Below are positions 925 through 21,198 of a stretch of DNA of 64,000 nt, in pieces. The DNA lies in sequence record PQ464590.1, one strand, 5' to 3'. The position numbers were made by a program, and so were the translations under genes. Below the pieces are notes generated by a model, which saw nothing but the letters and a program-made list of their open reading frames with translations, was not told the origin of the DNA and ran no database searches. The stretch's first letter is position 1. Each line of letters begins with the position of its first letter.

Positions 925-1008
925 AGTATTTTTTACTGTTCATTTGTACAGTACTAATCCACCAGCTACACTTCCGCACCCTGTGGGCTTGAGCATTGTT
1001 CTTGCTAT
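925..1008 (-). ncRNA. CCCACAGGGTGC element copy 1
   Basis: Core 976-987; H1 AGC/GCT; promoter TTGACA-17-TATTAT at 1015-1043; ends approximate. Confidence 0.55.
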
Positions 1009-2449
1009 GTACTAATAATAGCAAAGGGGCTGAACGATGTCAACCCCTTATTAATTAAACTAAACAATTGATATTGTTTACAGTACTGCTACTCTCTTCC
1101 TCTTCCCACTCTTTGAAGTACTTCACCGCATCATAGTATGTGTGGTTAACTTCTTTCTTGTGCTCGTCTGATAGTGCTTTATAATCATCGCGAGCGTGCA
1201 GGGAGTGAATAGGGAGCTTACTTGCTGCCAGGTCCGCTGCGTCACGGATGAGGTTCTGTACAACGGTTGGCATGTCTTCAAAATTCATTTCATAATCTCC
1301 GCTTGCAAATCGTCTGCACCTGCTTTATGGTGCTCCAGTACTTCACTACGTTGCCAGTAGTCAAGCGACTTCAGGAGTATACTATCATCCGGTGTCAGTA
1401 CTGTCAAGCCTTTACCGATATTATAAAAGCGTGCTTTGAGTGCATCGAGATCAATCTGAATCATTATGCTATCCTATCGTATTGAATCATTATCTGTTGA
1501 ATGTACAGGGCTAGTGAGCCGTCCTGTATCGATGAGGCCACCAGCAAGGCGGCCAGGATAAAGATCATTCCAGCGGGGATTCTCATTCGATAGTCTCACG
1601 CTGCCACAACCGGCGGACTGAGTCATGGTTAGCCAGTGCAGTGAGAGAGTTTTCGTGAACCATTGCCAGTGCTTCACTGCTGAAGGTTGTCCCTGGCTGA
1701 TAGTATACGTGATTGTTATCGTCAATGAAAACAACATCGAACGGGCGAGCGGCAGAGTCAGACCATTTGCGGGTTTCGAATCGAGCCATTATACTATCTC
1801 CAGGTGAGTGGGAAGAGGTGATTCTCTTCCCTATGCAAATGATTATACAGTACTGTTACGCCTTGTCAAGCTCTGCGTCAGTAAAAACAAAACTTTTAAT
1901 ACGTTCTGTTACTTTGCCAGTACTGTCAAGATCTTCCACCGCTACGAAGTAATCCAGTAGATGATCATGTAACAGGTCGATGTAATCCAGTGCGTCAAGA
2001 TCGTCTTGACATGGTTTGAAGAAGGGCATAATGTGTGCAAACTCTTCCGCGAGATCTTCCATCTGGAATACGTGGGCTACAGTTACGCCGCTATTAGTTA
2101 CTCGATGGGCATGGACACGTGCTGCTAAAGTAATCATGGTATATCCTCGTTAAGCGGGGATAGTTGTTACCCCCTATGCAAATGATTATACAGTACTATC
2201 GATTGTTGTCAATACTTTTGATCACCATCTTGCAATATAACTCTAGGGCTACCAGGATGCTTCCTGTGGTTGTTTTGGTTCTACCCTGGCGAACGACATA
2301 GGCATCACCATCACGTTTTAGAGTGACATCATTATACTGCTTCAATGGTGGATTGTACTGTTTGGACTTACTGGACATTCTAAACCTCTCTATTTTACGA
2401 GATCAATTATTGATCAATCTTTGATGGAAGTCAAGTTATATTTGATCAT

Positions 2450-2508
2450 TTCTTGATCAATATATTTTAGATACATTTGTGCACCCTGTGGGTTAGCTTG
2501 TTTCTATG
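2450..2508 (-). ncRNA. CCCACAGGGTGC element copy 2
   Basis: Core 2481-2492; H1 TAG/CTA; promoter 2515-2543; ends approximate. Confidence 0.5.
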
Positions 2509-2554
2509 GGATCTATAATAGCAAAGGGGCTAACCGAAGTCAACCCCTTGTATA

Positions 2555-2983
2555 TTAAATGTATGAGAAATTTGGCTGTACTTTTTTCATTTCTTCTTTA
2601 GGATCTAGTCCTGATTCTATGATAGCACTGTACCATTGTTTAAACTCGTTAAACTCTGCAAACTTGTTACCTCGTAGGTTGTTACATCTACGGCAAACTG
2701 CTTTGACGTTTACTGCGTCACGTGTACCTCCTAAGCTCCTTAACAAGTCATGCTCTACTGTTAGTTTTTGGGAGAAGTCGAAAGTATATACACTAATCCG
2801 TTTCTTAACTGTACCAGATGCTACAACCGCTTTATAACCGCAGCAGTGGCATCGATTACCATCACGAGCCATTGCATTGATGATAGCTAGACTACCTGAA
2901 CTAATAATAATATCATGCTTAGTCGCGTATAAACGTTCTGACGCTTCATTAAAATCATCACCATCTTTGTACAGTACTTTCAT
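2555..2983 (-). CDS. HNH endonuclease-like protein
   Basis: CHCCG ... TVEHD ... GG ... N ... VCRRCNNLRGNK fits the His-Me finger/HNH pattern. Confidence 0.8.
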   Translation of the reverse strand: MKVLYKDGDDFNEASERLYATKHDIIISSGSLAIINAMARDGNRCHCCGYKAVVASGTVKKRISVYTFDFSQKLTVEHDLLRSLGGTRDAVNVKAVCRRCNNLRGNKFAEFNEFKQWYSAIIESGLDPKEEMKKVQPNFSYI

Positions 2984-3068
2984 CTTTTGAACCTCTTAAT
3001 CATCGTTTAATAGATAATAGCAAAGGGGCTAACCGAAGTCAACCCCTTGTATAAACTTTTCAGTACTG

Positions 3069-3659
3069 TTATCTTAGTAGCTCACGCTTCACGCGGCGGC
3101 GATCTGACAGTCCGTAATGCTGGAAGATGGTACGCTTTGATAATCCAAAGTCTAGCATCTTCACACAACCATTTGCAGACATCCCCAGGTTACGAATATG
3201 CATATCAGTAGCATTGACGTAGTTCAAGTGATAGTCCAGTACTTCAACTGCTTTATAATGCAGGTAAGCCTTACGCTGTGCTTTTGTGAGGTTGTTCCTG
3301 AACCGTACAGCAAAGAGATCATTTGCATACTTGCGGCGACCTGTGAACTGTGTTTCAAGACGTTCCATTACGATAAAGTAATCTTTGTAATGGCAAAGGT
3401 TAACATAGATCTTTGCAAAGTATTTCTTCCACCCTGCGAAATCATAGTCCAGCATATGCCATACGCGGATTTCGTTTTCATTCTGTTCTACGCCAGCATG
3501 ACCCAGGGCGATCTTAATTACTAACTTATCGTTAATCGCGAACACTACTCGACAGGAGCCATTACCAATCTTCTGTAGACCAGCAGCCTCGCAAGCCTTG
3601 ATCATTTCTCGATTGCTCATATCTTCCAGTGATTCTAAGAATTTACGATAGTGTTTCAT
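3069..3659 (-). CDS. protein kinase-like (ePK/APH fold)
   Basis: Gly loop IGNGSCRVVF, VIKIA lysine, MERL hinge, DMHIRN catalytic loop, DFG. Confidence 0.8.
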   Translation of the reverse strand: MKHYRKFLESLEDMSNREMIKACEAAGLQKIGNGSCRVVFAINDKLVIKIALGHAGVEQNENEIRVWHMLDYDFAGWKKYFAKIYVNLCHYKDYFIVMERLETQFTGRRKYANDLFAVRFRNNLTKAQRKAYLHYKAVEVLDYHLNYVNATDMHIRNLGMSANGCVKMLDFGLSKRTIFQHYGLSDRRRVKRELLR

Positions 3660-4029
3660 TTGTTTAGTTCCTTTGCTTAAGTGATGAAAAGAGTATACAG
3701 TACTAATCAGTTTAATGCAATAGCCGAGAGTGCAGAAACTTCATTATAATGTACTTTATTGTTAACAGTACTGTAAACGCGTGCTTTACCATTCTCAATG
3801 ATAACCTTTGCAGTATGATCCTTTGAAACCATGATGATAGTTTCTTCAGTACTGAATCGAGATACAACAAAACCCAATGAAACAATTTCATTTAGAGTTT
3901 TAGCAGAGGACGCCTGGATCAGTGTGTTAGTAGTAGATGGCATTTCGTTATTCCTTAATATTGTGTACTTCGTTTCGATGGGTACATAATACTAAAAGGG
4001 TTGAACCACGTCAACCCTTTATTTTCTCT

Positions 4030-4398
4030 TTATTTGCGTTTACAATCCACCAGCCCCGAAACGATTACTTTTGATTCATCGCGAATAGTAACCGAGCCTT
4101 TGTTTGTGATTTCGTTCACACGAATAGTAGTACTGCCCGTGGCGTCCTCTTCGTGCCAGATCAGATCTTTACCCTGGCGTTGATAATCGTCGTATAATGC
4201 AATCTGCTCCTGTACTGCTGCCCCTGTACTCTCTACAGTCATATTGAGCGTGCAAACCTTCTTTGGCTTGGGTGTGCCAGTACTGAAAGTACTACCATAA
4301 CGATCCGCCATCTGCTGTTCAAAGGATAGTGACGCGTTCGCGTTGAAGGTGATAGCTGCCAGCAGGGACGCGATAGACACAAGTTTATATTTTTGCAT
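4030..4398 (-). CDS. exported hypothetical protein
   Basis: Signal peptide-like N-terminus ending ANA-S. Confidence 0.65.
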   Translation of the reverse strand: MQKYKLVSIASLLAAITFNANASLSFEQQMADRYGSTFSTGTPKPKKVCTLNMTVESTGAAVQEQIALYDDYQRQGKDLIWHEEDATGSTTIRVNEITNKGSVTIRDESKVIVSGLVDCKRK

Positions 4399-5061
4399 GT
4401 TAATCTTCCTGTGAGTTTATACAGTACTGAGCCAGTTGCTCAATTGTTTGGCCTTGCTCGTGTAGTGTTACCAGTTCAAAGGCTATCTGTGAACAATGGT
4501 ACACTACTGCTTTGCTTGCGTCAAGTCGTTTTAATTCCTTGACTACTTCTTGATACACGTTCAAAGTTTCTTACTTGCTCCAACGATGATTAGATTTAAC
4601 AGCATCGATAGTACTGGATGTTTCGCATAACCTGGGCGTAACTTCTTAGCCTCAATGATTGTGCGTGCTGCCTCTTCACGGTTTAGCTTATCCAGTACTA
4701 ATTGTACATTTGTCATCTGTGCTGAACCTTCAGCCATTTTATAACGTTTACCCTGAACAATAACAGAATGATAAGTAACGGTTGACATCTTCGATCCCTT
4801 TAGTTTAAGTTATCGCATTAAAGGATCTCCTTACAATTCGTGTACTTGATTTTATAGTACTGGTGAATATTACGAAATTCATAAATGAATGACGTGATGT
4901 TAGCTTGCAGGTCATCAAAGTCCTGACCTTCTACGATGTGTTGTGACTCTTCGTAATTGTCCTCTCCTGGCTTTAAGCCTTTGAGGGTGATTTGTACTTT
5001 CATTGTTTACCCTCCTTTGCTTCAGTACTGACATCTTAACATATCCACGGCCCATGTCAAC

Positions 5062-5131
5062 TGGTTATTTGTACAGTACTTTTAATTTGTTTATTTCTGT
5101 GCACCCTGTGGGCTGCGGCTTATCTGCCAAT
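5062..5131 (-). ncRNA. CCCACAGGGTGC element copy 3
   Basis: Core 5101-5112; H1 GGC/GCC; promoter 5138-5166; ends approximate. Confidence 0.55.
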
Positions 5132-5190
5132 GACTATATAATAGCAAAAGGGTTAACCGAAGTCAACCCTGTTTATTTGTACAGTACTAA

Positions 5191-5544
5191 TTAATTTACT
5201 TGATTAGTTTCGCCGGTTTTGCGATTGTAGATACACTTTGCTTCACCGAGTTTTTTGGCATCAAAGGCTAACAGTGCTTCTTGTTCGGAGCTTGCCTTGA
5301 TGATTACAGAATCTTCAGCATAACGGGCATCATCGGCTGGTTTATAAGTGATGGCGTATTCTACTACGTCAAAGAAAACATCTACAGCAGCTTGCAAGCG
5401 GTCCAGTTCTTCCGCCAGTTTGCGGAGTTGTTCAGGTGAGATCTTCTCACTGTACAGCGTAGCGTAAACACCTTCAGGTGAACCCACCAGCGTAACATCA
5501 TGACCAGCTAACAGAGCTTCGCGAGTTAAAGGAGATTTAGACAT
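5191..5544 (-). CDS. hypothetical protein
   Basis: Start reassigned to MSKSPL; promoter at ~5588-5616. Confidence 0.65.
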   Translation of the reverse strand: MSKSPLTREALLAGHDVTLVGSPEGVYATLYSEKISPEQLRKLAEELDRLQAAVDVFFDVVEYAITYKPADDARYAEDSVIIKASSEQEALLAFDAKKLGEAKCIYNRKTGETNQVN

Positions 5545-5633
5545 TTTGCAATTCCTTATTAAGTTGGGCTGTCGCACTATTGCCGCCCTATGAAACTAAT
5601 TATACAGTACTGTACTGTAAACGCAAGTACTTT

Positions 5634-5876
5634 TTAACGCTGATTCACAAAAAGATTATACTTCTCATGAGTCATTAGATGTAGATCTTCCCCGTCTATT
5701 ACGATACGATCTGTGCGGGATACTTCCAGTACTGAAAACAGCCCATTAGACAGCTTACGCGGCGTTGTGCGGCCTTCAACGTAATCAGTAGCCATCTGTA
5801 CAGCCTTTTGCAAAAGCTTTGCCTGTGGCTTGCCGTGCACCTTCATACATCGGTTGCCGATCTGGATCTTCTTCAT
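5634..5876 (-). CDS. small basic protein, possible RelE/ParE-like fold
   Basis: 80 aa; RKL..G..SVL.V....RIV.....LMTHEKYN pattern recalled from ParE-like phage proteins. Confidence 0.35.
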   Translation of the reverse strand: MKKIQIGNRCMKVHGKPQAKLLQKAVQMATDYVEGRTTPRKLSNGLFSVLEVSRTDRIVIDGEDLHLMTHEKYNLFVNQR

Positions 5877-5925
5877 GTTTTATGTTCTCTTAAAGGTTTG
5901 GGAGGGTTTCCCCTCCCTGGTTAGA

Positions 5926-6426
5926 TTAGATTGCTACGCGACGTTTGACCAGTACTGGAATCACCGCACCTTTGCGATCTTTGTACTCTTCGTGCACATT
6001 ACGCACGATTGACGCTGGGCGAGGGAGTTCAGCTTGTTTGATGTCCAGTGCTGCGAATGCTTCACGCAGGGCATCAGTGGTGCTTTGTGCTGGAATGATT
6101 ACAGCATCTTCATCCAGTTCTGCAAGTACAGCGTTCAATTCATCAGCATTGTCCAGTTCTGCTACAGTTGCCGTTTCTTTCACAGGCCATGATTTAGGCA
6201 TGTTCAATGCTTCGGTCAAGCCGTCGATCAGCTTCTTATCTTCAGCAGTTGGGACATTCATTTCTACCGCTTTGCACGCCGCGATAACGTCTGACAGTTC
6301 TTTAAACTCAACCGCCCAACGTTCACCTTTAGGAGCATCTTTGCCCATGTCTTTGAAGGTTTCACCTTCTTCACGTGCAACGATTCGGGCAGCTTCACGG
6401 GTAGCAAAGAATTTGATAGTAGACAT
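5926..6426 (-). CDS. hypothetical early protein
   Basis: 166-aa ORF with GAGG RBS and own promoter cassette at ~6470-6522. Confidence 0.8.
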   Translation of the reverse strand: MSTIKFFATREAARIVAREEGETFKDMGKDAPKGERWAVEFKELSDVIAACKAVEMNVPTAEDKKLIDGLTEALNMPKSWPVKETATVAELDNADELNAVLAELDEDAVIIPAQSTTDALREAFAALDIKQAELPRPASIVRNVHEEYKDRKGAVIPVLVKRRVAI

Positions 6427-6519
6427 TTGGTAGTTCCTCTGTTTAGTTAATGTGTCGTCTTGATGAAAGTAATTATGCCAGTACTATCAAACGTTGTCAA
6501 TAGTACTGAGTAATTATTT

Positions 6520-6627
6520 TTAACCGATGTTCAAACACATTACAATTGCCAGTACTGCCACTGCTGCTACCTGGATTCGATTGATCTTGATAGCTTTGAT
6601 TTCGCTGTTTCGAATTGCTTGTTTCAT
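6520..6627 (-). CDS. 35-aa membrane peptide (below ORF-track cutoff)
   Basis: MKQAIRNSEIKAIKINRIQVAAVAVLAIVMCLNIG; GGAG RBS; its stop codon is the start of the next promoter cassette. Confidence 0.55.
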   Translation of the reverse strand: MKQAIRNSEIKAIKINRIQVAAVAVLAIVMCLNIG

Positions 6628-6714
6628 TTTTGTTTACTCCGTTGTGTTGTCTTGATGTAATACAGTATACAGTACTGAATGATGAATGCAAGTACTTTCT
6701 GAAAATAATTTCTC

Positions 6715-6790
6715 TTTTCTTCTGTACTTCTATCCCTTAAACTCAGGACGGATTTGTGCACCCTTGAGGGTTAGACCATTTCACTGGATT
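6715..6790 (-). ncRNA. CCCACAGGGTGC element copy 4 (loop variant CCC-TCAA-GGG)
   Basis: Core 6758-6770; H1 CCA/TGG; promoter TTGACA..CATAAT at ~6797-6828; ends approximate. Confidence 0.5.
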
Positions 6791-6845
6791 GAATACATTA
6801 TGCCAAAAAAGAGGGAGACTGTCAAGCCTCCCATTTGTAAAGATT

Positions 6846-7220
6846 TTACTGGTTTTCGATTTGTTCTTTCTGATAGTCTGTCAGTACTAACATGATTTCG
6901 GCAAACTCCAGTACTTTACCGCTAGACACTTCCACTTCCCCAGGGTAGCATTCAAAGTTTTCGTAGTGATCTTTACAGAAGGAATAAACTTCATCGTTTT
7001 CGATGTCCAGTTCGATCTCTTCATCCAGTTCGAACATCGCCCATTCAGTATGGTAATGACCATCGTTCAGGCGTTCAAGTAAAACGTTGACCATTTCAAC
7101 TTGTACCAGGTTATCACCAACCCACTTACTTACCAGTTGTGGTTCGTCCATTTCCAGTACTGCACAGGATTTACCGTTGTGGATGATTACGTCAGTGATT
7201 TTGAGTTCTGAACCTAACAT
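6846..7220 (-). CDS. acidic hypothetical protein
   Basis: GAGAG RBS before ATG 7220; promoter at 7273-7300. Confidence 0.7.
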   Translation of the reverse strand: MLGSELKITDVIIHNGKSCAVLEMDEPQLVSKWVGDNLVQVEMVNVLLERLNDGHYHTEWAMFELDEEIELDIENDEVYSFCKDHYENFECYPGEVEVSSGKVLEFAEIMLVLTDYQKEQIENQ

Positions 7221-7303
7221 GATATATTCTCTCTTAATAGTGGGGAGAGTCATTCTCTCCCCTATGCCAGCCATTATACAGTACTGGCGTATGGTGTCAA
7301 CAA

Positions 7304-8158: not shown

Positions 8159-8324
8159 TCTTTCCCCTTATTAGAGTATAATTGCAATTGCTCATTATGA
8201 GCACGGACAGATTGAATCGCCTCAATAAATTCTATTTGAGACTTTTCTTTCTTAAAATTATTAGTACTGTTATTCAGTACTGAATTAATAGGAGTAATCA
8301 TTTCTTTTATTCCTAAATTAAAAA

Positions 8325-8346
8325 GCTGGTGGGTTAAACCACCAGC
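8325..8346. terminator. intrinsic terminator whose stem is an inverted Chi pair
   Basis: GCTGGTGG-GTTAAA-CCACCAGC, followed by TTTTT on the minus strand, directly after the stop of ORF 8353..8712. Confidence 0.75.
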
Positions 8347-8352
8347 ATTATA

Positions 8353-8712: not shown

Positions 8713-8872
8713 AATGCCTTTACCGCCTTTACGATGTCTTTGACTGAACGGTTAGCATACACCATTACTTCGATCATTGCAATGGCTTTTGGTGAAACAT
8801 TGCCAACTTTATTCAGTACTGCTTCAAATACCTGGTCTTGCTTGCTCATGATAGTACTCTCGTTTAGATTAA

Positions 8873-8948
8873 GGGTCGGGGCTGAGTGGATTCGAACCAC
8901 ACTTATTCAGTACTCGAACTGTTCTACCTGTTGAACTATCTAGCCCCG
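8873..8948 (-). tRNA. non-canonical tRNA-like element (76 nt; possible mimic or pseudogene)
   Basis: D-arm GTTC-AACAGGTA-GAAC; T-arm GTGG-TTCGAAT-CCAC; acceptor CGGGGCT/AGCCCCG; degenerate anticodon arm GTTC-GAGTACT-GAAT; ends ACCC. Confidence 0.7.
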
Positions 8949-10216
8949 ATGTAATACATCTTACTCTTCGTCGTCGCCGTTGTCAAGCGAAACATCAAAC
9001 AAATTTAAAATTTCGTGTCTGTGCTGGAGTAGAAATTCTGTGATCGCGATGTTATCATAAGGCGATAAGCCAGTGTTAGGACGTTCAGCACGGACAGTAC
9101 TGATCATTTTACCAACGAGATTATTAATCTCTTCCTCGTTCGCTTCAATGGCTTTCTTTGCTGAATCGTACAGCTTGCCTTTGTATTCGAATTTGGTAAC
9201 AGGTCGAATCTTTGCCATTTCTTTTTCCTCTTAAGGGTTAGGGTACTTCAGTACTGGAATACTGTTTCCCCTGGGGTGTGGCTGGTTACTTGACTTGATT
9301 GATTATACAGTACTGGCTAATGATGTCAATACCTTTTACATGAAATCGATCAGACCCATGTTAGATGCAATTTCGACGGCCTGGACTTTATCAGCGTCAA
9401 CTGGTACAAGATGTTTAAACGTCAACGCCAGATCACCGCAGAAGTAATAGAACGTGTTTTCGTTATAGGTGCAACGTTCGCCAGCGTCCTCAACCTCATC
9501 GCTATGGAAGAAAGGCATCCCTTCGTTGAAAACATATGCAACCGCGAGATCGATGTTATCCGCACGTACCAGGCGTTTAACAGTTTCGGTGTACTCACCC
9601 TGGCGAGCTTCCATAGTACAAACAAACAGGTTCAGGCCAGTAGCTTCGGTCATGGTTACGTTAGACATAATTTAATTCCTTAATGGTTGGTTAGTGTCGT
9701 TTCAATAAAGTTATTATGCCAGTACTATCAATCTATGTCAATAGTACTGGAGTAAAACTTTATGCGGTTTTCTTCTCTATAGTTACGTAAGTACTAAGAC
9801 CCGCGTACCAGTCTTTAAAGCCACGGCATTTACGCCCCGCTTCCTGGATGCTAACATAGAATGTGCCTGGCTCGCGTTCTCCGTTGTCAACTTCGGCGGT
9901 GAGTTTGGTAATGGCTTCAGTCAGTGCTACCTGGCAAGCCGCAACGTTTTTGACATCGTTAAAGATAGTACCGCAGAAGTTAGGAGTACCGTTGTAACGC
10001 ACACGAACGAAACCATCGGATACTTCACAGTTACGGAAAGAGATTTTGAGATCCATGTTAATTCACCTTAATGTTTGAGAGTAGAACCATTTCCCCTCTC
10101 GATGTAAACAATTATACAGTAATGAAGATCTATTGCAAGCATTATTTTAAAATATTCAGTACTTTTATTTGAATCTTTTCGCTTGACATACAACGCCAGT
10201 ACTGTATAATTAGTAC

Positions 10217-10312
10217 ATAAGCCGGACACAAGGCACTAACCCACAGGGTGCGGAAATGTATCTATAGGTTATAGTACTGTACAAATAAACAGGGGGAATT
10301 GCAGTTCCCCCT
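10217..10312 (+). ncRNA. CCCACAGGGTGC element copy 5 (stand-alone small RNA candidate)
   Basis: Promoter 10183-10210; core 10240-10251; terminator-like hairpin 10291-10312; no ORF; opposite to flanking genes. Confidence 0.7.
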
Positions 10313-10822
10313 AACCAGGATAGTCAGCGTTTATTGATTGCGTGCAAATGTGTTATCGGTTAAGATGTCCCAGGTCGCTTTCACGATACGATACATTTCA
10401 CCAGTACTCACACCGCGTACAGTACTCTCAATGCAACCGCCGTTTGCAGAATGCTTTTCTAGTACCATGTAACCATTTTCAGAATGAGACTGATAACGAT
10501 ACGGGGCATCACGGAAGAGTAAAGCACCGTTCAACTTGTCAACCATATCTGCTACATCTTTGCGAGTTTTACGTGACATCTTTTGTTTCCTTAATGTTGT
10601 TTGCTTCAGTAAGTTAATTATGCCAGTACTATCACCTATTGTCAATAGTACTGTGATAATTATTTTAACCGTTAAACCAGAAGTCGAATAATTCTTTTGG
10701 TGTAGCGTCGTAGTACTTTGCAGCCTCTTCAGCAGCAGCCTCTTCAGTGAAACCGTCACGTGTAATTAAGATATGCATAAAGTCACATCCTAACTCCAGG
10801 GCCGCAGTGTCGTTACCGTGGA

Positions 10823-11767: not shown

Positions 11768-13124
11768 GATTCTTTCCTTAATAGTGTATGTCGTTTCAAT
11801 AAAGTAATTATGCCAGTACTATCAAACTATGTCAATAGTACTGAGTAATTATTTTAACGGTTGTAAATGTCATGAATCAAAATGTATGATTCACGTTTAA
11901 TGTGTGGATGGTAAGGCAAATAATGCTTATCCAGTACTGACATCAAATCCTGTTCGAGATCATTGATATCATCATAGAATGTTGGGGATACCAGGATATG
12001 CAATATATCAGTATCCACCAGCGTTGCATTGAGTTCCTGCACGTTCTCAATATCCGCATTACGCTTCCAATCTTGCATATTGGAAGTCAGCACGGTACGA
12101 ATGTCATTAGCGTTTAATAAAATATCCATTATTGATTCTCCTGTTTAAGTAAAGTAATTATGCCAGTACTATCAAACTATGTCAATAGTACTGTGATAAT
12201 TATTTTACCTTTTTATCCGTAGTAAAGTACATCGCGATCTGGCGGGTAGTCAGGCACGCCGCACGTAAAGCACGCTCAGTATAGGAGGCATGTTGGTTAA
12301 AGCGATGCATCCCCAGGCCGTTACCGATAGTAATGTTTTCAGTTGCTTTGTATTGTTTCTGATTCATTGCCGTACCCTCTTAAGTGTCGTTAAAGTAATT
12401 ATGCCAGTACTATCAAACTATGTCAATAGTACTGTGATAATTATTTTAATCCAGGATTAACAATTCAAACGTGTAAGTACTGTTTTGAACGCGGTACTCA
12501 TGACGGTTTCCCACTTCGCGGATCTTAATCAAACGCGTATGCGATACCAGGTTTAACGCCTCGCGTACATCCACCAGCGTTTTACAGTCACTGATATCTT
12601 TGTTGAAGTTATCAGAATCACAGACCAGTACTCGACGGGCATTTTTCAGAATCTTGTTAATCATTTTCTACTTCCTCTTAAGAGGGGAGGTTGTCTCCCC
12701 TATGCAAAACATTATACAGTACTGAGATTACTTTGCAAGTACTTTCTATTACTTTTCTGCGGAGTACTTGTAAAAGATATCAGTATTCAAAGCATCCAGT
12801 ACAAAGTTTTTAAAATCCATTTCCGCAAGGCTGTAACGCTCTGTGCAGAACTGTACTGGCGTATGCTTCCCGATTTGCTTCAGTACTTCCCAGGTGATAC
12901 CAGTCTCAGTCTCAGGCGTTTCACGGCGAATGATACAAGCGTAGTAAGAGATCAGTTTACCTTCCTGACCATAAGAGAACTCTTTAACTGTAGTAGATGT
13001 TTCTGTGTTTTCGAATAATTCCATTTTGTTACCCTCTTTAAGTTAGGCTTTGTTTGCCTGATGTAATACAGTATACAGTACTGAATAATTAATGCAAGTA
13101 CTTTCTCAAAATATTTTCTCTTTC

Positions 13125-13204
13125 TTTTTCCTGTACATATGTACAGTACTTTTATTTTACTTACTTCTCCGCACCCTGTGGGCTTGAGCATTGTTCTTGC
13201 TATG
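13125..13204 (-). ncRNA. CCCACAGGGTGC element copy 6
   Basis: Core 13171-13182; 5' part identical to copy 1; promoter ~13210-13240; ends approximate. Confidence 0.55.
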
Positions 13205-13555
13205 TGAGTATTATGCCAAAAAAGAGGGAGACTGTCAAGCCTCCCTTTTGTAAAGATTTATGCTTTTGGAATGCGTTTCGGCATCGGTGGAGTAGACCAG
13301 TTATTGTACTGGCGTTCTGTGATTTCGCCACCTTTGCAAAGAGAGTCGATATAGTTCGACCAGGATTCATGGAAAGCTGGCTGGTCATTCTTCCAGCGTG
13401 GATCTTGCTGTACCATCGCAATCCACATTTCTTTGTGAGCTTGTACTACAGTTGCCTTATTCATAATCTTCTCTCTTAAGTTCGGAGGGAGAACCGTTTC
13501 CCCCTCTCGATTTAAAACATTATACAGTACTGAATACTATTTGCAAGCTTTTCTT

Positions 13556-14044: not shown

Positions 14045-14764
14045 GATTGTTTCCTTAATGTTGTTTCGTTTCGATAAAGTACATTCTACAGTACTATCAC
14101 ACAAAGTCAATAGTACTGGATGAATATATTTTACCAGCCCGCATTACAACGACGTGACGCGTACACTTCGCCCTGACGAATTACCATGCGGTGAGATCCT
14201 ACCACCTGTGCCACACGGGTTTTAAAATCGTGCTCAGTACTAAAATCTTTTGAATCCACTTCGTCGATGGTTTCAACTTTACCCGCGAATTTCACATTGA
14301 TATAACGTTTCATATTTTGTTTCCTTAAGTGTTGTTTCAATAAAGTACATTCTACAGTACTATCACAGAAAGTCAATAGTACTGGATGAATATATTTTAT
14401 TTGTGTTCTAACATGTAATGATAAGTAATGTATTTTGATTCATCACCAATCAAATCAATATACGCCTGGAGCGTCAAACGATCTGGAAGCGGGGGAAGTT
14501 CTAAACATTCCTGTACTGTAACCATTTCGTCAAACGTGTACTTAACACGCCCCGCACGATTCCATTGATTCAGTAATTCCGCAGGGTGTAAACCAGGGAT
14601 CATGATGCATACAGAATCAATTCGAACGTTATCACCGTTCACAGATACAAACTCAGAGTGATACTTAAAAGCTTTAGTGAATGCATGTTTCATTTTTATT
14701 TCCTCGCTTTGTTTCGATATAGAGAAGTATACAGTACTGAATAATATTTGCAAGCATTATTTTA

Positions 14765-14848
14765 CCTGTTCTTTTATACAGTACTATTTCAGTACTAATA
14801 CTACAGATACACTTCCGCACCCTGTGGGCTTGGCCTTTGTTCCGGCTT
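14765..14848 (-). ncRNA. CCCACAGGGTGC element copy 7
   Basis: Core 14817-14828; H1 GCC/GGC; promoter 14855-14884; ends approximate. Confidence 0.55.
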
Positions 14849-15835
14849 GATAGTACTATAGCAAAAAAACTGGGAGGCTGTCAACCCCCCATTTGTAAAT
14901 TATTTGCTTTCCAGGTAAACGCCGTATTCGTTCGTTTCACCTTCCCACACGCGGTTGATCGTGTACGCGTCCGAATAGATGTTAATCTCATTCGTGGTAT
15001 AGTCTACCGCTATTTCGTTAATGTCGAAAGATCCGTGGGAAGTGGTTACAGTACTGGCATTAGGGAAGATTGTAACGTTCTCCACCTTACTAAGTGCACG
15101 CCCAAATTCATCACGGATAACGATAGTCATGCTCATTGTTCTTTCCTCTTAAGTGGGGGAAGATGTTTCCCCCTTGAGTACTAATATACAGTACTGGAAA
15201 ACTATTGCAAGTACTTTGTGCAATTATTTTTTAGTACTATCGCCACGCCGCCCCTGTGCCATAGCCTGTGCCTGTTCTACACTAAAACGCTCATACAGGC
15301 TTTTCTCTTCAGGGGTTAGTGTGGCGGCTTCCCGCATCATACGCCCCGCACGATCCCAGCTACGCGGCGTAGGGATACCCTGGATATCTTCGGGGGCAAT
15401 GTCGGGCACGCCTGGAACGTCTACAAACTCGATCCCCAGCTTTTCGGCTTGTTCACGGAATACACTAGATAATAGTTTCATCTTTAAAGCTCCTGTATCG
15501 CTCTGTGAGCGGTTTTAATGGTTAATCAGTACCGTACAACGCTTTAACGTCAAAAGCCCCGCTAATCGGCTTACAGGGCTTATCAATGCGATAGTGCACG
15601 CCACGATCCGATACGAAATAACCCTCAATATCTAAGTACATGAAAAACTCTTTCAGCACTCCACCGATTACACAAACCATCCACCCACTAGCACGCTTTT
15701 TGTGTAGACCATCGTTAACGAGAATCTTTCTCATTACGGTGCCAGGTGTTGTGATTTCGCTTAAGTTTCGCATTTCGATCTCCTGAATGATATTAGGATA
15801 GTACTGTACACGTATACAGTACTATCATTAACCAC

Positions 15836-16279
15836 TTAGGCAGTGTAAGCCGGATTAGGCACACGGCGGGTAATGAGGCGTACATCGTGCGGAACGTTCT
15901 CACGGTAGCACTTCAATTGTGCTTTTGCCTCTTTCATGGTTTCCTCGCTGGTGGCATCATCCCAACCATAGCCGCAATTCTCCTGGATCACATACTCATT
16001 GATCCATTTGGTTACACGCTTAGGCTTCATACAAGCCGCCACAATCGCATCCAGGCTGTTCTGTAACATTTCACCGTAGTACTCCCAAAACGCCGGATAG
16101 TTTGCTTTGATAAGCTTGAACTGGATTTTAATCTCATCCAGGTTCGCCTGTGTCAGTACTAAACCGCTTTCCTTCACTTCTTTCACTGACATTGCTTTCT
16201 TGCTTACACGCCAGTTGTAGCCAGAAGCATAACCAGGACGATTCATGATCAGGTGAGTATCTAAGAATAATTTAGCCAT
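15836..16279 (-). CDS. hypothetical protein
   Basis: 147-aa ORF with AGGA RBS. Confidence 0.7.
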   Translation of the reverse strand: MAKLFLDTHLIMNRPGYASGYNWRVSKKAMSVKEVKESGLVLTQANLDEIKIQFKLIKANYPAFWEYYGEMLQNSLDAIVAACMKPKRVTKWINEYVIQENCGYGWDDATSEETMKEAKAQLKCYRENVPHDVRLITRRVPNPAYTA

Positions 16280-16390
16280 TTTGTAATTCCTTAATTAAGT
16301 ACTGTCTCGATTTGATAAAGCTCATTATACAGTACTGGATAACTATTTCAACTGTTAATTTATCCAGTACTGTCGTAATGTACTCTATGC

Positions 16391-17017
16391 TTATGCGTTC
16401 ACGCCGTTTTTAGCTTCCAGGGTAGCGGCTGCCGCCTCTTTGTCTACCGCGTACTTGGTAATGAATGCCGCACGGTCATCGCCAAACTCAGCAGATACAC
16501 GCTCTTTCCAAATGTTCGGCATGTTGCCAGTAGTAGGCATGTCGTATGCTTCGCCGTTGAAATCAATCGCTACGCGGTTGAACGTGAACGACTTTTCAGA
16601 TTTAGCAGGGTACTTTTTAGCCATCGCCGTGTCTACCATACCCTGTGCCACTTCCAGATCCAGGCCCATCTTTTCAACGATGTCTTTCAACATGTTTTCC
16701 GCTTCCTGTTTACGGGCTGCCAGTTCTGCCGCGTTCTCAGCTTCACGCTGTGCTTTACGGGTCGCCAGGGTGTCATTCAGTTTTGCCAGGCGTGCGATTT
16801 TGTTCGCTTCTTTCTGCTCTGCGGCTTCTTTCTGGCGGGTCTTAACCTGCTCTTTCGCGGACTTCACAGCCAGGGAGAAATTCAGCCCCATCTTCTGTAC
16901 CAGTGCAACCGCATCATCACCACCAGCAGCGATAGCCAGGTCAGTCAGTTTAGTTGCCAGTACTTCCACATTACCAGATTCGATAGCAGCTTTCAGAGTT
17001 ACGATTGATTTAGACAT
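16391..17017 (-). CDS. divergent H-NS/StpA-like protein
   Basis: Manual alignment: LAKL..coiled coil..GLD..PAK, then IDFNGEAYDMPTTGNMP..K..G..F versus H-NS [19 protein letters not shown]..F. Confidence 0.6.
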   Translation of the reverse strand: MSKSIVTLKAAIESGNVEVLATKLTDLAIAAGGDDAVALVQKMGLNFSLAVKSAKEQVKTRQKEAAEQKEANKIARLAKLNDTLATRKAQREAENAAELAARKQEAENMLKDIVEKMGLDLEVAQGMVDTAMAKKYPAKSEKSFTFNRVAIDFNGEAYDMPTTGNMPNIWKERVSAEFGDDRAAFITKYAVDKEAAAATLEAKNGVNA

Positions 17018-17430
17018 TTTTAAATCCTCAGTTAGTAAGTTAGGTTATTTGTTTGCTTCGGGGTTAGTATTACATTTTGCTAACCATCCGTCAAGTACTA
17101 TTTTAAATCTTTTTTTCATCTTTCGGTCGCCTGGTTTTCGTTTGACTTACAGGCTGTCTACTTAGTGTTGCCCCGTTCGATGTAATACATATTACCAGAG
17201 TAGAAACTATTTGCAAGTACTTTCTACAAAATAAATGAATCTTTTTACTTTCCTTATACTTTACCAGTACTTAAGATGCAACGCCACCAGCAGCCTTGTA
17301 ACGTGTTTAAATCAGTACAGAACCCTATGACATACCCCAGGGAGTAAAAGCCCGTACAACGCGTTACAGGCCATTTAAATTGATTGAAAATAGTTGTTGA
17401 CTTCATATGCCAGTACTGTATAATGACCCC

Positions 17431-17524
17431 ATAGCTTAGACAAATAGCTCAGCCCACGGGGTGCGGAATTGTGTCTAATGAATATAGTACTGTACAAATA
17501 AACAGGGGAAGCCGTAGCCTCCCC
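17431..17524 (+). ncRNA. CCCACAGGGTGC element copy 8 (stand-alone small RNA candidate)
   Basis: Promoter 17397-17424; H1 AGCT/AGCT; core variant 17453-17464; terminator hairpin 17505-17524 followed by a T-run. Confidence 0.7.
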
Positions 17525-18315
17525 ATTGTTTTTATACTCGTTTTAATGCCAGGGCAAAATCCCCTACTTCGGCCACCGATCCCGTAAAGCGTTGCATATA
17601 ATCCACTACCGTGCTGTTTTCCATCGGGGCAATGATTAGATTATCCTGATCACGTGCGGCGATGTCAAAGAAAACAACCTGCGGATCATAGTTACCGACT
17701 TTCGCTGCGGCTTCAGCCATATCCGCACAAATACGCTGTAAGTCACTTAAACGCATAACAGTACTCATGATACTTCTCCTTAATAATGGGGGAAGTTGTT
17801 TCCCCCTATGCAAAACATTATACAGTACTGAATGAGTTATGCAAGTACTTTTTTTACAAGCAAGGGGCGTAAACTTTACCAGTGTTTACCCAGACGTTGA
17901 ATTTCGGCATCTTATCCCATTCATCCATCGTTAACCCCAGGGCGTGCAGGTAGTCAGTACTGAATACGCCGCCACGTGGTTCAATGCGATAATCTTTATG
18001 TACTGCGTAAAGCTTCCCTTTGTACTCATACGCCAGGGTTAAATCACTGGTATTCATCGCATGAATCAAAGTGTCTAACATCGCGTGCATTGCGAATTGT
18101 TCACGCTTAAGAGGCTGTGAACGTGCGACGGCACGCCAGGCTGCAATAGTACTGTTAACAGTTTCACGGGACTGATTATTCATATCAGCACGGAAGTTAA
18201 TCAGGTCATTCATTGCGTTAATCATAGACATAATATTTTCTCTCTTAAGTTAGTAGGGGAAGTTGTTTCCCCTATGCAAAACATTATACAGTACTGAATG
18301 AGTTATGCAAGTACT

Positions 18316-18732
18316 TTATGCATTTTCTTTTTTATGTTCTGCGGCTTTAATCCAGGCCATTTCCGCATTGTCGGAATGACTAACCCAATGACCCTCAAAG
18401 CGTACTACCCAAGATGGCTCGCTTTCACCGTGAAACTCGCGTTGTACAGTGTAACGCTTATCGGCTTTTGCAGTACTGATATATTCACCGAACAATTGTT
18501 TAACCAGGCGTTTCCATTGCGTGCGAGCGTCTGTGAGATTCTCTTCTGATACCCACTCAATACGGCCTACAGAATCATAGTTGTGTGCTCTTACATGCCA
18601 GCAACCATGCTCAAGCCACAAATCAATGCGGATCTCTTCCCCTGATACTTTTGATTCTACGCGTTGAATATAACCACACAGGAAAGAATAAGCAGTTAAA
18701 CCCTGGCCATTTCGAAATTTAGTATTGAACAT
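18316..18732 (-). CDS. hypothetical early protein
   Basis: 138-aa ORF with AGGA RBS, leader hairpin and promoter. Confidence 0.75.
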   Translation of the reverse strand: MFNTKFRNGQGLTAYSFLCGYIQRVESKVSGEEIRIDLWLEHGCWHVRAHNYDSVGRIEWVSEENLTDARTQWKRLVKQLFGEYISTAKADKRYTVQREFHGESEPSWVVRFEGHWVSHSDNAEMAWIKAAEHKKENA

Positions 18733-18803
18733 TGTTTTGTTTCCTTAAGTAGTGGGGCGAACCATTCCGCCCCGTTGAGATACACTATACAGTACTGAAT
18801 ATT

Positions 18804-19187
18804 TTATGCAAGCTCTTTCGACAAAATATTTTCAAAGTACTTGATAAGATCTTCCAGGAGTTTAACACGGATCACACCCGTTTCCCCTTTGTACAGGTTA
18901 GGAGAACGCCCGTATAATTCACCTGCTAACGCGTTACTGTCTACTAACTGCCGCTCTACTGGATAGTCTATATTAAGACCCATTTCAACAAATACAGGCT
19001 CAAGGGCATGATAATCTACTCCGTCCCGTGGTGGAGTGAACGCGTATACATGCCAGCAGATACCTGCTGCCTCTTCCAGGTTGAAAGCTATGCCGTGTGC
19101 ACGGGTATATGTATCATCTGTCTCTACACAGGTTTTAATGCTTTTCAGTACTGGTAAAATATGGTTAACCTGATTTAATGTAAACAT
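18804..19187 (-). CDS. hypothetical protein, GIC/YPxE paralog family
   Basis: Shares GIC..YPVE..G..R..LL..LI.Y with ORFs at 52014, 52387 and 59361. Confidence 0.7.
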   Translation of the reverse strand: MFTLNQVNHILPVLKSIKTCVETDDTYTRAHGIAFNLEEAAGICWHVYAFTPPRDGVDYHALEPVFVEMGLNIDYPVERQLVDSNALAGELYGRSPNLYKGETGVIRVKLLEDLIKYFENILSKELA

Positions 19188-19324
19188 GTTGTTTCCTTAA
19201 TAGTGTTGTTTTGCTTCAGTCCCTATATAGTACAGTACTGACAAAAGAATGCAAGTACTATTTTCATAAAAAAGATTTTGCATTTAGGTATTGACTCCAC
19301 CCACAGAACCTGTATAATTAGTAC

Positions 19325-19400
19325 ATAAGCCGGACACAAGGCACTAACCCACAGGGTGCGGAAAACCGTCCAGTACTGTAAATGATTATCATTCTCATTC
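19325..19400 (+). ncRNA. CCCACAGGGTGC element copy 9
   Basis: Promoter 19291-19318; core 19348-19359; first ~47 nt identical to copy 5. Confidence 0.6.
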
Positions 19401-19447
19401 GCCGGGTGTACCTCCGCACCCTGTGGGCTACGTCATTTCGCTGACTT
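19380..19447 (-). ncRNA. CCCACAGGGTGC element copy 10 (convergent with copy 9)
   Basis: Core 19416-19427; H1 GTCA/TGAC; promoter TTGCAA..TACAAT at ~19454-19482. Confidence 0.6.
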
Positions 19448-19864
19448 GTACTAATTGTACAGTACTGAAAAATTATTGCAAGCTTTATTTTCAGGGAGGG
19501 CGAACCCTCCCAGAGTCCCTACGCCGCGTTGTGAGGCGTTATTACAATCAGTGGTATATAGTCCCGTAATTCTAGCGTATCGCCGTCTGTGAGGGCTTCC
19601 AGGGCTTCCACGGTGCAAGCCTCGCACGGGTAGTACATGAGAACATCACCCATAGTCATGATAGTTCCATTAACTTTAAAGTACTGTTTAGAATATTTCT
19701 GTCGCATGATAATCATTCTCATTAACCAGGTTCGACTATCTCCCCTGTTCTGAAATTCATTATACAGTACTGAATTGTTATTACCAGCATATTTTTCACA
19801 TTCTTTTTGAATCTTTTTGCGTTTAGGGTATTGACATAAAATCGCAGTACTGTATAATTACTAC

Positions 19865-19940
19865 ATAGACGCGAGATGCGGGAACCCCAGGGGGTGCGGG
19901 AATATAACCATAAAGCGAAATGATTCTCATTCTCATTTAG
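19865..19940 (+). ncRNA. CCCACAGGGTGC element copy 11
   Basis: Promoter 19831-19858; H1 CGC/GCG; core variant 19885-19897. Confidence 0.55.
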
Positions 19941-19996
19941 CTTTTAACGGACGGACTCCCGCACCCTGTGGGCTTGTCCTGTTACGCCAGGATTGA
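19920..19996 (-). ncRNA. CCCACAGGGTGC element copy 12 (convergent with copy 11)
   Basis: Core 19961-19972; H1 TCCTG/CAGGA; promoter TTGCAA-17-TATAAT at 20002-20030. Confidence 0.6.
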
Positions 19997-21198
19997 AACT
20001 AATTATACAGTACTGAATTATTTTTTGCAAGTACTAAAAATAGTAGTAGACAATTCATTTCTATGTGATAAGATGATTCCAGATTTAAAACAATTCGATT
20101 CCAGATACTGCCAGGGAAAAAACAACCCTGACGCGGTAGGCTAGCCGCACCCCGCGATCTAGCAAAGGTAAATGCGAATCATTCCTATTTGCAAATGAGA
20201 ATCAATCTCATATGCGAACGAGTATCATTTGCAAATGCAGATGATAACCATTCTCATCTGGCTCAAAATTCGAGTCGGCTTTAGCTCGCCCTAAAGAAAG
20301 CCACCAGCAACCCTTCGTGTATCCATAGTACTGCCATAGTACTGCCATAATTCTTCAATTAATCTCAGTACTGAATGCTTAGCCAAACAGTACTGTTTAT
20401 GTTTTCCGATGGAGGTCAGAAATCTTATTAAGTGGTGAATCCAATTCACTATTCACAGTACTATAGGGATAGGTGGTCCCATGTTAATAGTACTACTATA
20501 GTGAACTGCACTTACTTAAACAACATTCGGGCAGTCATGAAGTTCACCGTGTTCATGAAAGTAGACAGTCCCTAGGCTTAGCAGTACTGGAATGATGGAA
20601 GGCACACACTTCAGTACTGAAAGCTTTCTTTTACTCTTTGACGATGTACACCAGGATATAACGTAGGAGCTTAGCTGGTGTGCCTATCTCCCTCGTAGGA
20701 CGCTATTATCACATATACGCGTGTCCACGTCAAGCTTTATTTTCAATAATGCAGTACTGAATTTTTGGGCCAGGCATGATCGAGATTTAGGATGGAGCAC
20801 CTTCCAGATTTTTGCTGGAGGGTCATTGACTTTTTTAAATTTTCAACTTTTTGCTGGAGGGTCATCGGGAATTTCCCTGAAGCCTGGTTCCCTCCTTTCT
20901 CCCCACCTCATTGTACACCCCTCTTGTAGTACTGTCAAGAAATACTTCTTGTACTCTGACGTTACAAGAAGATATAGTTGCAGGGGTGGTACAGTACTGA
21001 ATAGTACTTAAGAATGCTTTGCCGTGTTTACCTGTACTTCTGTACATATGTAATTATACCCATACATATAAAAATGTACAGTACTGTACGTATATACAAA
21101 TGTGCCTTTTACGGGGTGTTGAATCCTTTCGATAACGTTTTGTCCAGGGGGAATTTACCCCCTGTGTAAGATTACGTTCTCTTTCAGGAACTAACACC

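Follow-up and report, generated by a model that had tools for sequence, protein, structure and literature searches.

A two-hairpin RNA module coupled to sigma-70-type promoters in the early region of Rak2-like jumbo phages

Erwinia phage Hallingskeid is a Rak2-like jumbo myovirus with a 366-kb genome. In its first 64 kb, the window analyzed here, a short repeated element is found twelve times, eight on the minus strand (976, 2481, 5101, 6758, 13171, 14817, 19416, and 19961) and four on the plus strand (10240, 17453, 19348, and 19886). Allowing up to two mismatches, we found the core at 11 sites compared with 2.1 expected, and none of 100 shuffles got to 11. The twelfth copy (6758) is a variant of the second hairpin with a 4-nt loop, and the same variant is present in RaK2. 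A covariance model built from relatives recovered all 12 copies, the weakest match being 19863-19913(+) (14.8 bits, E 0.23); it returned nothing further in the 64-kb window at E≤1 and no matches in the last 48 kb of the genome. The twelve positions and the restriction to the early region proposed in the original prediction were thus both confirmed. The copies and two associated hairpins are as follows (bit scores from the covariance model).

960..1043, minus: copy 1; promoter 1015-1043 (11/12; -35 within terminator hairpin 1049-1024), module 960-1010; 43.1 bits, E 1.5e-10
2465..2543, minus: copy 2; promoter 2515-2543 (-35 in hairpin), module 2465-2509; 35.7 bits
5085..5166, minus: copy 3; promoter 5138-5166 (-35 in hairpin 5170-5149), module 5085-5133; 29.5 bits
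6742..6825, minus: copy 4; promoter 6797-6825 (-35 in hairpin 6832-6813), module 6742-6792; 28.6 bits; 4-nt loop in hairpin 2
10183..10267, plus: copy 5; promoter 10183-10210 (12/12), module 10218-10267; 45.3 bits; stand-alone, antisense to the genes around it
10290..10313, no strand assigned: GC-rich hairpin past copy 5, ~75 nt from the copy 5 start
13155..13238, minus: copy 6; promoter 13210-13238 (-35 in hairpin 13246-13225), module 13155-13205; 38.0 bits
14801..14884, minus: copy 7; promoter 14855-14884 (-35 in hairpin 14891-14871), module 14801-14850; 54.1 bits, the best in the window
17397..17480, plus: copy 8; promoter 17397-17424 (11/12), module 17431-17480; 35.4 bits; stand-alone, antisense
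17505..17535, no strand assigned: hairpin past copy 8, with an A-run before and a T-run after it, a two-way terminator
19291..19375, plus: copy 9; promoter 19291-19318, module 19326-19375; 37.6 bits; plus member of face-to-face pair 1
19400..19481, minus: copy 10; promoter 19454-19481, module 19400-19449; 50.9 bits; gene-sense member of pair 1
19831..19913, plus: copy 11; promoter 19831-19858 (12/12), module 19863-19913; 14.8 bits, E 0.23; plus member of pair 2; the most divergent copy
19945..20030, minus: copy 12; promoter 20002-20030 (10/12), module 19945-19996; 42.5 bits; gene-sense member of pair 2

As had been predicted, a near-consensus sigma-70-type promoter precedes every copy in the window (12/12, scoring 9-12 of 12), and the 5' end of the module coincides with the predicted +1 of that promoter. 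Of 96 model hits, 88 have a promoter of 9/12 or better at a fixed distance, compared with 4% of random positions, and 62 of those 88 promoter-coupled hits have a conserved A exactly 7 nt past the -10. This placement of the module start exactly at +1 was not part of the earlier description. The module comes with two promoter builds, one with its -35 inside a terminator hairpin and one with an extended -10 after AGTACTG. The first, an 8-10-bp GC-rich hairpin with a T-run, is found in six of the eight minus-strand copies; the -35 hairpin is absent from the four plus-strand copies and two paired minus copies. Between every sense copy in the window and its gene lies a second promoter-like site, so that gene expression does not necessarily require the leader; among relatives, only 14 of 38 sense copies have such a site at a strict 10/12 threshold. 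The module marks approximately one-third of strong early promoters.

The predicted RNA starts at the conserved A and runs through 2-4 free bases into hairpin 1, which has a freely covarying stem of 3-5 bp and a purine-rich loop, mostly of 6 nt and with AA at its end. A 3-nt linker leads to hairpin 2, whose 4-bp stem is invariant and whose loop is 3-4 nt long; G and C, five variable purine-rich bases, and finally a conserved, unpaired, pyrimidine-rich tail of ~9 nt follow, for a total length of ~50 nt. Hairpin 2 is unchanged in 92-95 of 96 copies, and its loop variants in the window (ACA, ACG, TCAA, and CAGG) are as originally listed. Columns of the tail are pyrimidine or purine in up to 100% of copies, and no pairing signal was detected when the tail was tested. 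The stability of the hairpins is ordinary (z-scores -2.2 to +0.7).

Hairpin 1 had been described as changing in sequence while always pairing, and the data bear this out. Its stem has at least 3 bp in 12 of 12 window copies and at least 4 bp in 6 of 12. All four modelled pairs show two-sided change, with 90% of cells paired compared with 19-59% in slid controls. We counted 147 double-change cells versus 54±5 in shuffles, with 0 of 500 shuffles equaling the observed value, a number that owes part of its size to the model-fitted alignment and to lineages sharing common old variants and that corresponds to some tens of independent events. A model-independent test agreed: among 67 distinct copies, which include 40 different hairpin-1 arm pairs, 63% form a stem of at least 4 bp versus 25±5% in shuffles. 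G-U combinations outnumber A-C combinations 54 to 6, which places the structure on the transcribed strand. Identical hairpin-1 variants turn up in different genera. A third hairpin, said to follow most copies, did not hold up; the site lies directly 3' of just 5 of the 12, with a sixth upstream of the 5113 promoter, and it is not shown to be a hairpin because its arms never vary.

Three arrangements occur: sense copies ahead of genes, stand-alone antisense units of ~100 nt that run to a terminator hairpin, and face-to-face pairs. Eight of the 12 window copies precede genes in the sense orientation, and no terminator intervenes. Among 81 copies in eight annotated genomes, 38 are gene sense, 13 are antisense stand-alone, and 30 form 15 face-to-face pairs; the antisense units and pairs together therefore leave ~28 of the 81 copies leading no gene. 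The pairs, which account for more than one-third of copies in relatives and had gone unmentioned previously, have starts ~120-135 nt apart (~122 nt between the predicted starts of copies 9 and 10) and sit close to the ends of the early region in eight genomes. Antisense units align over ~105 nt and usually finish at terminator hairpins with differing stems; the terminator ~75 nt after them is conserved across genomes, and the units run into the terminator of the upstream sense gene. Units syntenic with copy 5 are present in seven other genomes, and synteny of the stand-alone antisense copies extends to other genera.

The element had been proposed to be a small-RNA family, two of whose stand-alone copies carry their own terminators. 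The part that stands is the syntenic antisense copies without a credible ORF (none was found on the plus strand at copy 5). The element is not simply a small-RNA gene family, because 8 of the 12 copies lie in sense upstream of genes. Judged by the features of a small-RNA gene (own promoter, no ORF, 50-300 nt, intrinsic terminator), 17431-17535(+) fits by sequence; across genomes, ~10 of 13 antisense units fit by fold reading and 6 of 13 by a strict terminator rule; the fit of 10217(+), which has no T-run, is weak; and the eight sense copies do not fit. Both hairpins, the one past 10240 and the one past 17453, are better formed on the opposite strand, and only the latter has a plus-strand T-run. 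The former (10290..10313) terminates the minus-strand gene 10331-10579 and lacks a T-run on the plus strand, so an own terminator for that copy is poorly supported. Read on the plus strand, the latter (17505..17535) has a T-rich run 3' of a stem with one A-C mismatch; at this imperfect hairpin, the copy-8 RNA would end at ~100 nt.

We asked how widely the module is distributed. It matches ~55 phage records by blastn, all with Enterobacterales hosts, and is present in ~10-13 copies in each of the eight related annotated phage genomes sampled, within the early region, which in relatives is the terminal repeat. In 20 kb, these short stretches alone match other genera at the DNA level (79-93%); the copy 3 promoter and module, for example, match CBB 6500-6562 at 81% (blastn). 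The module is the most conserved nucleotide feature of the early region in at least seven genera, a clade-wide sharing that the original prediction did not include. No copy matched any family in Rfam 15, which covers CRISPR direct repeats, ToxI, and known phage RNAs, whether at the gathering threshold or at E≤5-10 with lax filters, in keeping with the absence of a sequence match to Racr RNAs and pseudo-ToxI noted in the original prediction, and we found no description of the module in the literature.

The closest precedent for part of the element is the promoter-early stem-loop (PeSL) cassette of T4-type phages (Arbiol et al. 2010, PMC2839356; Comeau et al. 2014, PMC4122927), of which Rak2-like phages are distant relatives (PMC11780129). 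In both, a strong sigma-70-type early promoter is fused with a GC-rich terminator stem-loop overlapping the -35, the cassette lies in a plastic early region among small uncharacterized ORFs, and ~100 bp are conserved while flanking genes differ. The combination of promoter and GC-rich stem-loop at the -35/-10 is seen in six of the eight minus-strand copies. However, a PeSL ends 3' in a ribosome-binding site and the start codon of the next gene, which the module copies do not, and it has no conserved two-hairpin transcribed module. Here, the module, 50-200 more bases, and a second promoter-like site separate the promoter from the first ORF, and there are also a hairpin-less promoter build, antisense units, and face-to-face pairs. 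The promoter/terminator part resembles a PeSL; the transcribed module is new.

As a short structured RNA just past early host-polymerase promoters, the module also recalls lambda nut and HK022 put. In lambda nut, a single-stranded boxA lies 5' of the boxB hairpin with its purine-rich loop, and the N protein is arginine-rich; in HK022 put RNA, two stem-loops in the nascent transcript bind the polymerase and suppress termination in cis. Hairpin 1, a small stem with a purine-rich loop conserved in shape rather than in stem sequence, is boxB-like, and the two-hairpin layout recalls put. Unlike nut, the module has only 2-4 bases ahead of hairpin 1, and its conserved single-stranded block sits 3' of hairpin 2; the conserved terminators after antisense copies argue against put-like action; and there are 10-13 copies per genome rather than two, one-third of which lead no gene. 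With Racr anti-CRISPR RNAs and pseudo-ToxI, the module has in common that it is a multi-copy, structured, non-coding phage RNA made early (here predicted), but it forms no tandem arrays, has no Rfam match, and has its own promoter for each copy. Pseudomonas jumbo phage PA5oct, a distant relative, makes two abundant ORF-less RNAs from its terminal repeat, an early, highly transcribed region, as seen by RNA-seq (PMC7318152). Those RNAs are longer (236 and 451 nt), and the covariance model found no module in them (best 8.1 bits, E 0.34, filters off).

We tentatively favor the view, drawn from sequence comparison, that the ~50-nt RNA module is itself a functional, factor-binding product, because approximately one-third of copies lead no gene. 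A single factor, conserved among Enterobacterales hosts or among these phages, would bind the module and recognize the sequence of hairpin 2 and of the tail, and the shape of hairpin 1. With 10-13 strong promoters per genome (twice that if the region is a terminal repeat), bulk RNA would be made straight after DNA entry; gene-upstream copies would place the module at the 5' end of early mRNAs, and stand-alone and outward-facing copies would release it as a short RNA. The factor could be either titrated, as in the decoy idea of the original prediction, or recruited to the RNA.

Several points count against a product, and some of them equally suit a cis-acting 5' leader that acts only on its own transcript or polymerase, a possible reading that we nonetheless consider doubtful. 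Such a leader could promote terminator or Rho read-through or control pausing in the manner of nut or put, or it could be a 5' stabilizer or processing tag, in which case the antisense and paired copies would yield regulatory antisense RNAs that carry the tag. It fits the eight of 12 sense copies with no terminator before the gene just as well, as it does the 38 of 81 gene-sense copies in relatives; placement exactly at +1 (62/88 copies) is what a cis-acting 5' tag needs; hairpin 1 lies within 2-4 nt of the 5' end, in keeping with what 5'-stem-loop mRNA stabilizers are known to need; the early region is crowded with terminators, possible targets of a read-through device; and the invariant G spacing, the conserved T, and the strict pyrimidine-purine step in the tail may fit the published elemental-pause pattern. 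The thermodynamically ordinary hairpins and the weak (10239) or imperfect (17452) plus-strand terminators likewise weigh against a product. A leader, however, leaves one-third of copies with no gene to lead, and a conserved terminator ~75 nt past the antisense units is odd for an anti-terminator and pointless for a cargo-less tag. There is no lambda boxA-like conserved block 5' of hairpin 1, no N-like arginine-rich protein was evident among the 13 early proteins read, which include those behind modules, and the second promoter-like site precedes the gene after every sense copy in the window.

The remaining explanations account for less. An extended PeSL acting at the DNA level as a regulatory or recombination cassette, kept alike by recombination and with hairpins lacking any RNA function, would explain why six of eight minus-strand copies, placed among small uncharacterized ORFs, have their -35 within a GC-rich terminator hairpin, an arrangement also described for PeSLs (PMC2839356, PMC4122927), why DNA-level conservation between genera is limited to these short stretches, and why identical hairpin-1 variants occur in different genera. 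We consider it improbable, since recombination alone does not explain 40 different yet pairing arm pairs, and the G-U over A-C asymmetry, the fact that hairpin 2 tolerates loops of either 3 or 4 nt, the same module behind two unrelated promoter builds, and the PeSL's different 3' end are not accounted for. It is similarly unlikely that the copies are transcriptional insulators or antisense regulators that fire convergently into terminators and each other, fencing off early transcription units and terminal repeat edges by polymerase collision or double-stranded RNA; the 15 face-to-face pairs near early-region ends and the antisense units firing into the upstream sense gene's terminator suit this idea, but why hairpin 2 and the tail should be invariant and hairpin 1 covarying is left unexplained, as are the 38 sense copies. 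Most improbable of all is a coding role, in which hairpin 2 would supply a ribosome-binding-like stretch ahead of a 3-codon peptide in the tail: a common 3-codon reading is found in 14 copies, and a start codon stands at that column in 47 of 96, but half have none there, peptide lengths and residues vary, and conservation is of pyrimidine or purine at the nucleotide level, not of amino acids.

Returning to the module as a factor-binding product, a narrower and rather unlikely version is that it is an RNA ligand, mass-produced in the first minutes from at least 20 promoters per injected genome, that would soak up or reprogram a core factor shared by all Enterobacterales, such as RNA polymerase, Rho or Nus factors, RNase E, or Hfq. 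We found no candidate partner protein, and the genes behind modules have no arginine-rich or known RNA-binding features. These data establish the Hallingskeid element as an RNA-level module of Rak2-like jumbo phages that is coupled to host-type (sigma-70) promoters in their early region, and they widen the PeSL concept from promoter/terminator cassettes to cassettes carrying a transcribed RNA module. Isolation of Rak2-like jumbo phages for the control of Klebsiella, E. coli, Salmonella, and plant pathogens is widespread, and their early program is a black box of small unknown genes; a module with clear covariation provides a defined handle on how early transcription is organized or protected and a clean candidate for a new RNA family entry. 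If the core-factor ligand reading is true, Rak2-like jumbo phages would possess an RNA-based means of host take-over specific to their group.

We recovered all 12 copies (12/12) of the ~50-nt transcribed module, which consists of two hairpins and a tail, with a covariance model (R1) seeded with 23 copies, 21 of them from relatives; the copies of the original prediction were thus found again by a model built mainly on other phages. In Hallingskeid the scan covered the 64-kb window and the last 48 kb of the genome, and R1 gave no other match at E<=1 in the 64 kb and no match in the last 48 kb. The 12-mer core itself occurs 11 times at up to two mismatches (2.1 expected), and the copy at 6758 is a variant with a 4-nt loop. 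Eight copies run in the gene sense (minus strand) and four are plus-strand.

The anatomy of the module was taken from 96 model matches from ten sources. It starts with C in 72/96 and then A in 91/96, and in 62 of the 88 matches with a promoter of at least 9/12 (match to a sigma-70-type promoter) this A stands exactly 7 nt past the -10 hexamer; such promoters are found at only 4% of random positions. Given this fixed distance and the enrichment of promoters over random positions, we take the conserved A to be the predicted transcription start (+1); among the 12 window copies, 10217, 17431, 19325 and 19447 are examples of predicted +1 positions. Hairpin 1 begins 2-4 bases after it, with a stem of 3-5 bp and a loop that is 6 nt long in 63/96 and whose final two bases are A in 91/96 and 89/96. 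A 3-nt linker leads to hairpin 2, where A (53) or G (41) followed by C, C, C (in 92-95 of 96 copies) faces G, G, G, T (92-95 copies) across a loop of mostly 3 nt and, in some copies, 4 nt; the next bases are G (95) and C (87). Five variable purine-rich bases separate hairpin 2 from the tail, which consists of T (85), one variable column, a 100% pyrimidine column, a 100% purine column, T (76) and C (84), and ends in a mostly pyrimidine column followed by A and T.

The stems had been predicted to covary, and for hairpin 1 this was upheld. In the model alignment both sides change in all four modelled pairs, 90% of cells are paired and slid controls reach 19-59%; double-change cells number 147 against 54±5 in shuffles (0/500 reach 147), in an alignment fitted to R1 whose seed was picked for pairing. 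For that reason we ran a second test, in which copies were defined by hairpin 2 and a -10-like hexamer only. Among the 67 distinct copies obtained, 63% had a stem of at least 4 bp at the right place, compared with 25±5% in shuffles (maximum 40%), and 40 different arm pairs were seen. Because identical arm pairs were found again in different genera, independent covariation events number in the tens. Paired columns contained 54 G-U but only 6 A-C combinations, which places the structure on the promoter-read strand, as RNA or as single-stranded DNA of the same sense. In hairpin 2 the stem is invariant and covariation was never seen, which shows conservation at the level of sequence. Further candidate helices, either lengthening hairpin 2 through linker/spacer pairing or folding the tail into a short hairpin (two registers), showed no covariation and paired at shuffle level, and a pseudoknot between the hairpin-1 loop and the tail, inspected by eye only, was dropped because the tail stays the same whatever the loop. 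Hairpin stability is ordinary (z -2.2 to +0.7), and the case for structure is a comparative one to which energy adds no support. We conclude that an RNA-strand module, combining a shape-conserved hairpin, a sequence-conserved hairpin and a conserved single-stranded tail, sits at the predicted +1 of strong host-type promoters.

By blastn, promoter plus module was found in 53-59 phage records, all Rak2-like, with hosts in Escherichia, Klebsiella, Salmonella, Cronobacter, Yersinia, Serratia, Pectobacterium and Erwinia, and almost nothing in the 20 kb apart from these short stretches matches other genera at the DNA level. Fully sampled early regions carry 10-13 copies, about one-third of them opposite to the gene strand. 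Among the IMG/VR contigs scanned, true copies were confined to jumbo-sized contigs, and the others, in which a -10 fragment precedes an exact copy of the 12-mer, gave no model match; chance matches dominated an exact 14-mer scan of IMG/VR and were still the majority when the -10 fragment was demanded. A match to an Rfam family, considered a possible refutation, was looked for with the whole early region and two short stretches at the gathering threshold and at lax E-values, and none overlaps any copy; these searches also lend no support to Racr and ToxI, which had been put forward as precedents for a decoy RNA. The non-coding RNAs of PA5oct, considered as counterparts of the module, are unrelated, and we found no description of the element in the literature, which was searched both for this phage and for transcript data from these genera.

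We sorted 81 copies from eight annotated genomes by genomic setting. The sense setting accounts for 38/81. In the window, the -35 of 6/8 sense copies lies within the terminator hairpin of the preceding unit, and a second promoter-like site stands between each sense copy and the first ORF (three at >=10/12, the rest at 8-9/12 with an extended -10, partly judged by eye); in relatives, 14/38 sense copies have a promoter scoring 10/12 or better ahead of the first ORF. Another 13/81, including 10239(+) and 17452(+), stand alone in antisense, in units that are syntenic across genera, alignable over ~105 nt and, as predicted, devoid of a credible ORF. They end in a GC-rich hairpin with a stem that varies from genome to genome; in most relatives this hairpin has an A-run 5' and a T-run 3'. 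The two window copies had been credited with their own terminators, which fits 17452, where a plus-strand T-run follows the hairpin, and does not fit 10239, where it is absent. The other 30/81 form 15 face-to-face pairs, located close to where the early region ends in all genomes inspected, in which each predicted RNA would cross the complement of its partner's module. In both window pairs the predicted starts are ~122-129 nt apart:

19347(+)/19428(-), face-to-face pair 1
19884(+)/19973(-), face-to-face pair 2

Fur-box-like palindromes were centred in face-to-face pairs (2 sites at <=3 mismatches, 0.08 expected), and similar ones lie between pairs in RaK2, Munch, fHe-Yen9-03 and two IMG/VR contigs:

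19378-19396 and 19708-19726, Fur-box-like palindromes
~19920-19945 and 20190-20250, similar palindromes

A window scan with an SOS (LexA) box-like pattern gave eight sites, with 10 strand matches against 0.27 expected:

934-953, 4409-4426, 5169-5186, 10275-10292, 13131-13148, 14766-14783, 15802-15821 and 17488-17505, LexA-box-like sites

Five of the eight lie directly 3' of a module and are the same sequence as a third hairpin (AGTA-CTGT..ACAG) described earlier for most copies; it does follow five modules directly, and its arms never vary. In antisense units the site doubles as the complement of the T-run that belongs to the sense terminator. The 9-mer AGTACTGTA occurs 325 times at up to one mismatch in the whole window (25 expected), most densely in 1-23 kb. 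In the second promoter class, AGTACT adjoins the -35 and again the -10, ~21 bp apart, and the same hexamer is invariant ~62 nt into antisense units. A phage regulator may use the AGTACTGTA/AGTACT motif as its operator.

Promoters of at least 10/12 number 39 in 1-20100, 33 of them on the minus strand, and early 5' ends are of three kinds, namely the module (12) and the two leaders listed here with a tRNA-like sequence:

starts near 878, 1835, 2178, 7266, 12704 and 13512 (-), examples of a GC-rich hairpin of 7 bp at the 5' terminus, ahead of the ribosome-binding site
9706, 10610, 11330 and 11800 (-), examples of a short unstructured A-rich leader
8878-8945 (-), tRNA-like sequence, 33.1 bits against the Rfam tRNA model (gathering score 29)

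The 7-bp GC hairpins occur at a subset of module-less early promoters, at which 5'-terminal hairpins show no overall enrichment (57% versus 46±8% in shuffles). The tRNA-like sequence has good D- and T-arms, a shortened anticodon region and a mismatched acceptor stem, was not called by ARAGORN, and lies behind a 10/12 promoter with a predicted start near 8951. At 2400-2465 (-), between copy 2 (2465-2543) and its gene, a cluster of TGATCA/GATC-containing repeats surrounds a second promoter, and PBECO4 has the same arrangement behind the corresponding copy; modification at GATC has been reported for the phage DNA (PMC11780129).

The first 20.1 kb of the window are 100% identical to PQ464590.1 1-20100 of Erwinia phage Hallingskeid, a 366-kb jumbo myovirus of the Rak2-like "group 2.2", distant relatives of T4 (PMC11780129). 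About 60 small minus-strand ORFs fill 1-20 kb, almost all of unknown function. The homologous region of CBB is a direct terminal repeat of 22,456 bp (PMC5259590), the Muenster, fENko-Kae01 and vB_Ec-M-J records likewise annotate it as a terminal repeat, and RNA-seq of the distant relative PA5oct shows its terminal repeat to be the region transcribed early and at high levels (PMC7318152). By analogy with these relatives, we infer that the Hallingskeid early region is a terminal repeat; no second copy is present at the right end of its record. That end (PQ464590.1 343000-366158) holds long arrays of similar-sized minus-strand ORFs of ~110-220 aa and unknown function, without modules, and EJP2, GAP32 and Munch have similar arrays behind their early regions. 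GC skew, at first negative, becomes strongly positive at ~20-22 kb, the point at which the modules cease, and flips back at ~34 kb, in line with the change of coding strand. Short annotated CDS that overlap modules or their promoters are probably not genes:

896-1024, 5054-5194, 13092-13187, 17375-17497, 19318-19419, 19823-19936 and 19968-20144, CDS of 31-58 aa in the GenBank record

We tentatively favor the module itself as the product, a reading whose chances we put a little below even from sequence comparison, because ~28/81 copies lead no gene and conserved terminators follow the antisense copies. The main rival, a purely cis-acting leader serving read-through, pause control or 5' protection, is somewhat unlikely; it would account for the exact +1 placement, for a hairpin near the 5' end and for the spacing of the tail, with invariant G's and then T plus a strict pyrimidine-purine step 9-10 nt on, which would fit the published elemental-pause pattern. 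A nut-type site differs in the position of the conserved single-stranded block, and no sign of an N-like protein was seen among the early proteins read; the comparison with a put-type site covered the two-hairpin layout, which is reminiscent of put. A mini-ORF in the tail was tested and rejected.

The promoter/terminator part of six copies agrees with the structural definition of PeSL, the promoter-early stem-loop cassette of T4-type phages, but that definition includes neither a transcribed module nor the second type of promoter, and neither antisense units nor face-to-face pairs (PMC2839356, PMC4122927). A PeSL-type DNA cassette with no RNA function would leave both the covariation and the strand asymmetry unexplained, and we consider it improbable. 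Insulation by convergent firing has an equally slim chance, as it does not explain why the module is conserved. Returning to the module as product, the RNA-strand location, the fixed +1, the two types of hairpin and the tail together suggest that one conserved factor would recognize it. Large amounts of the module would be produced as infection begins, and some early mRNAs would also carry it at their 5' end.
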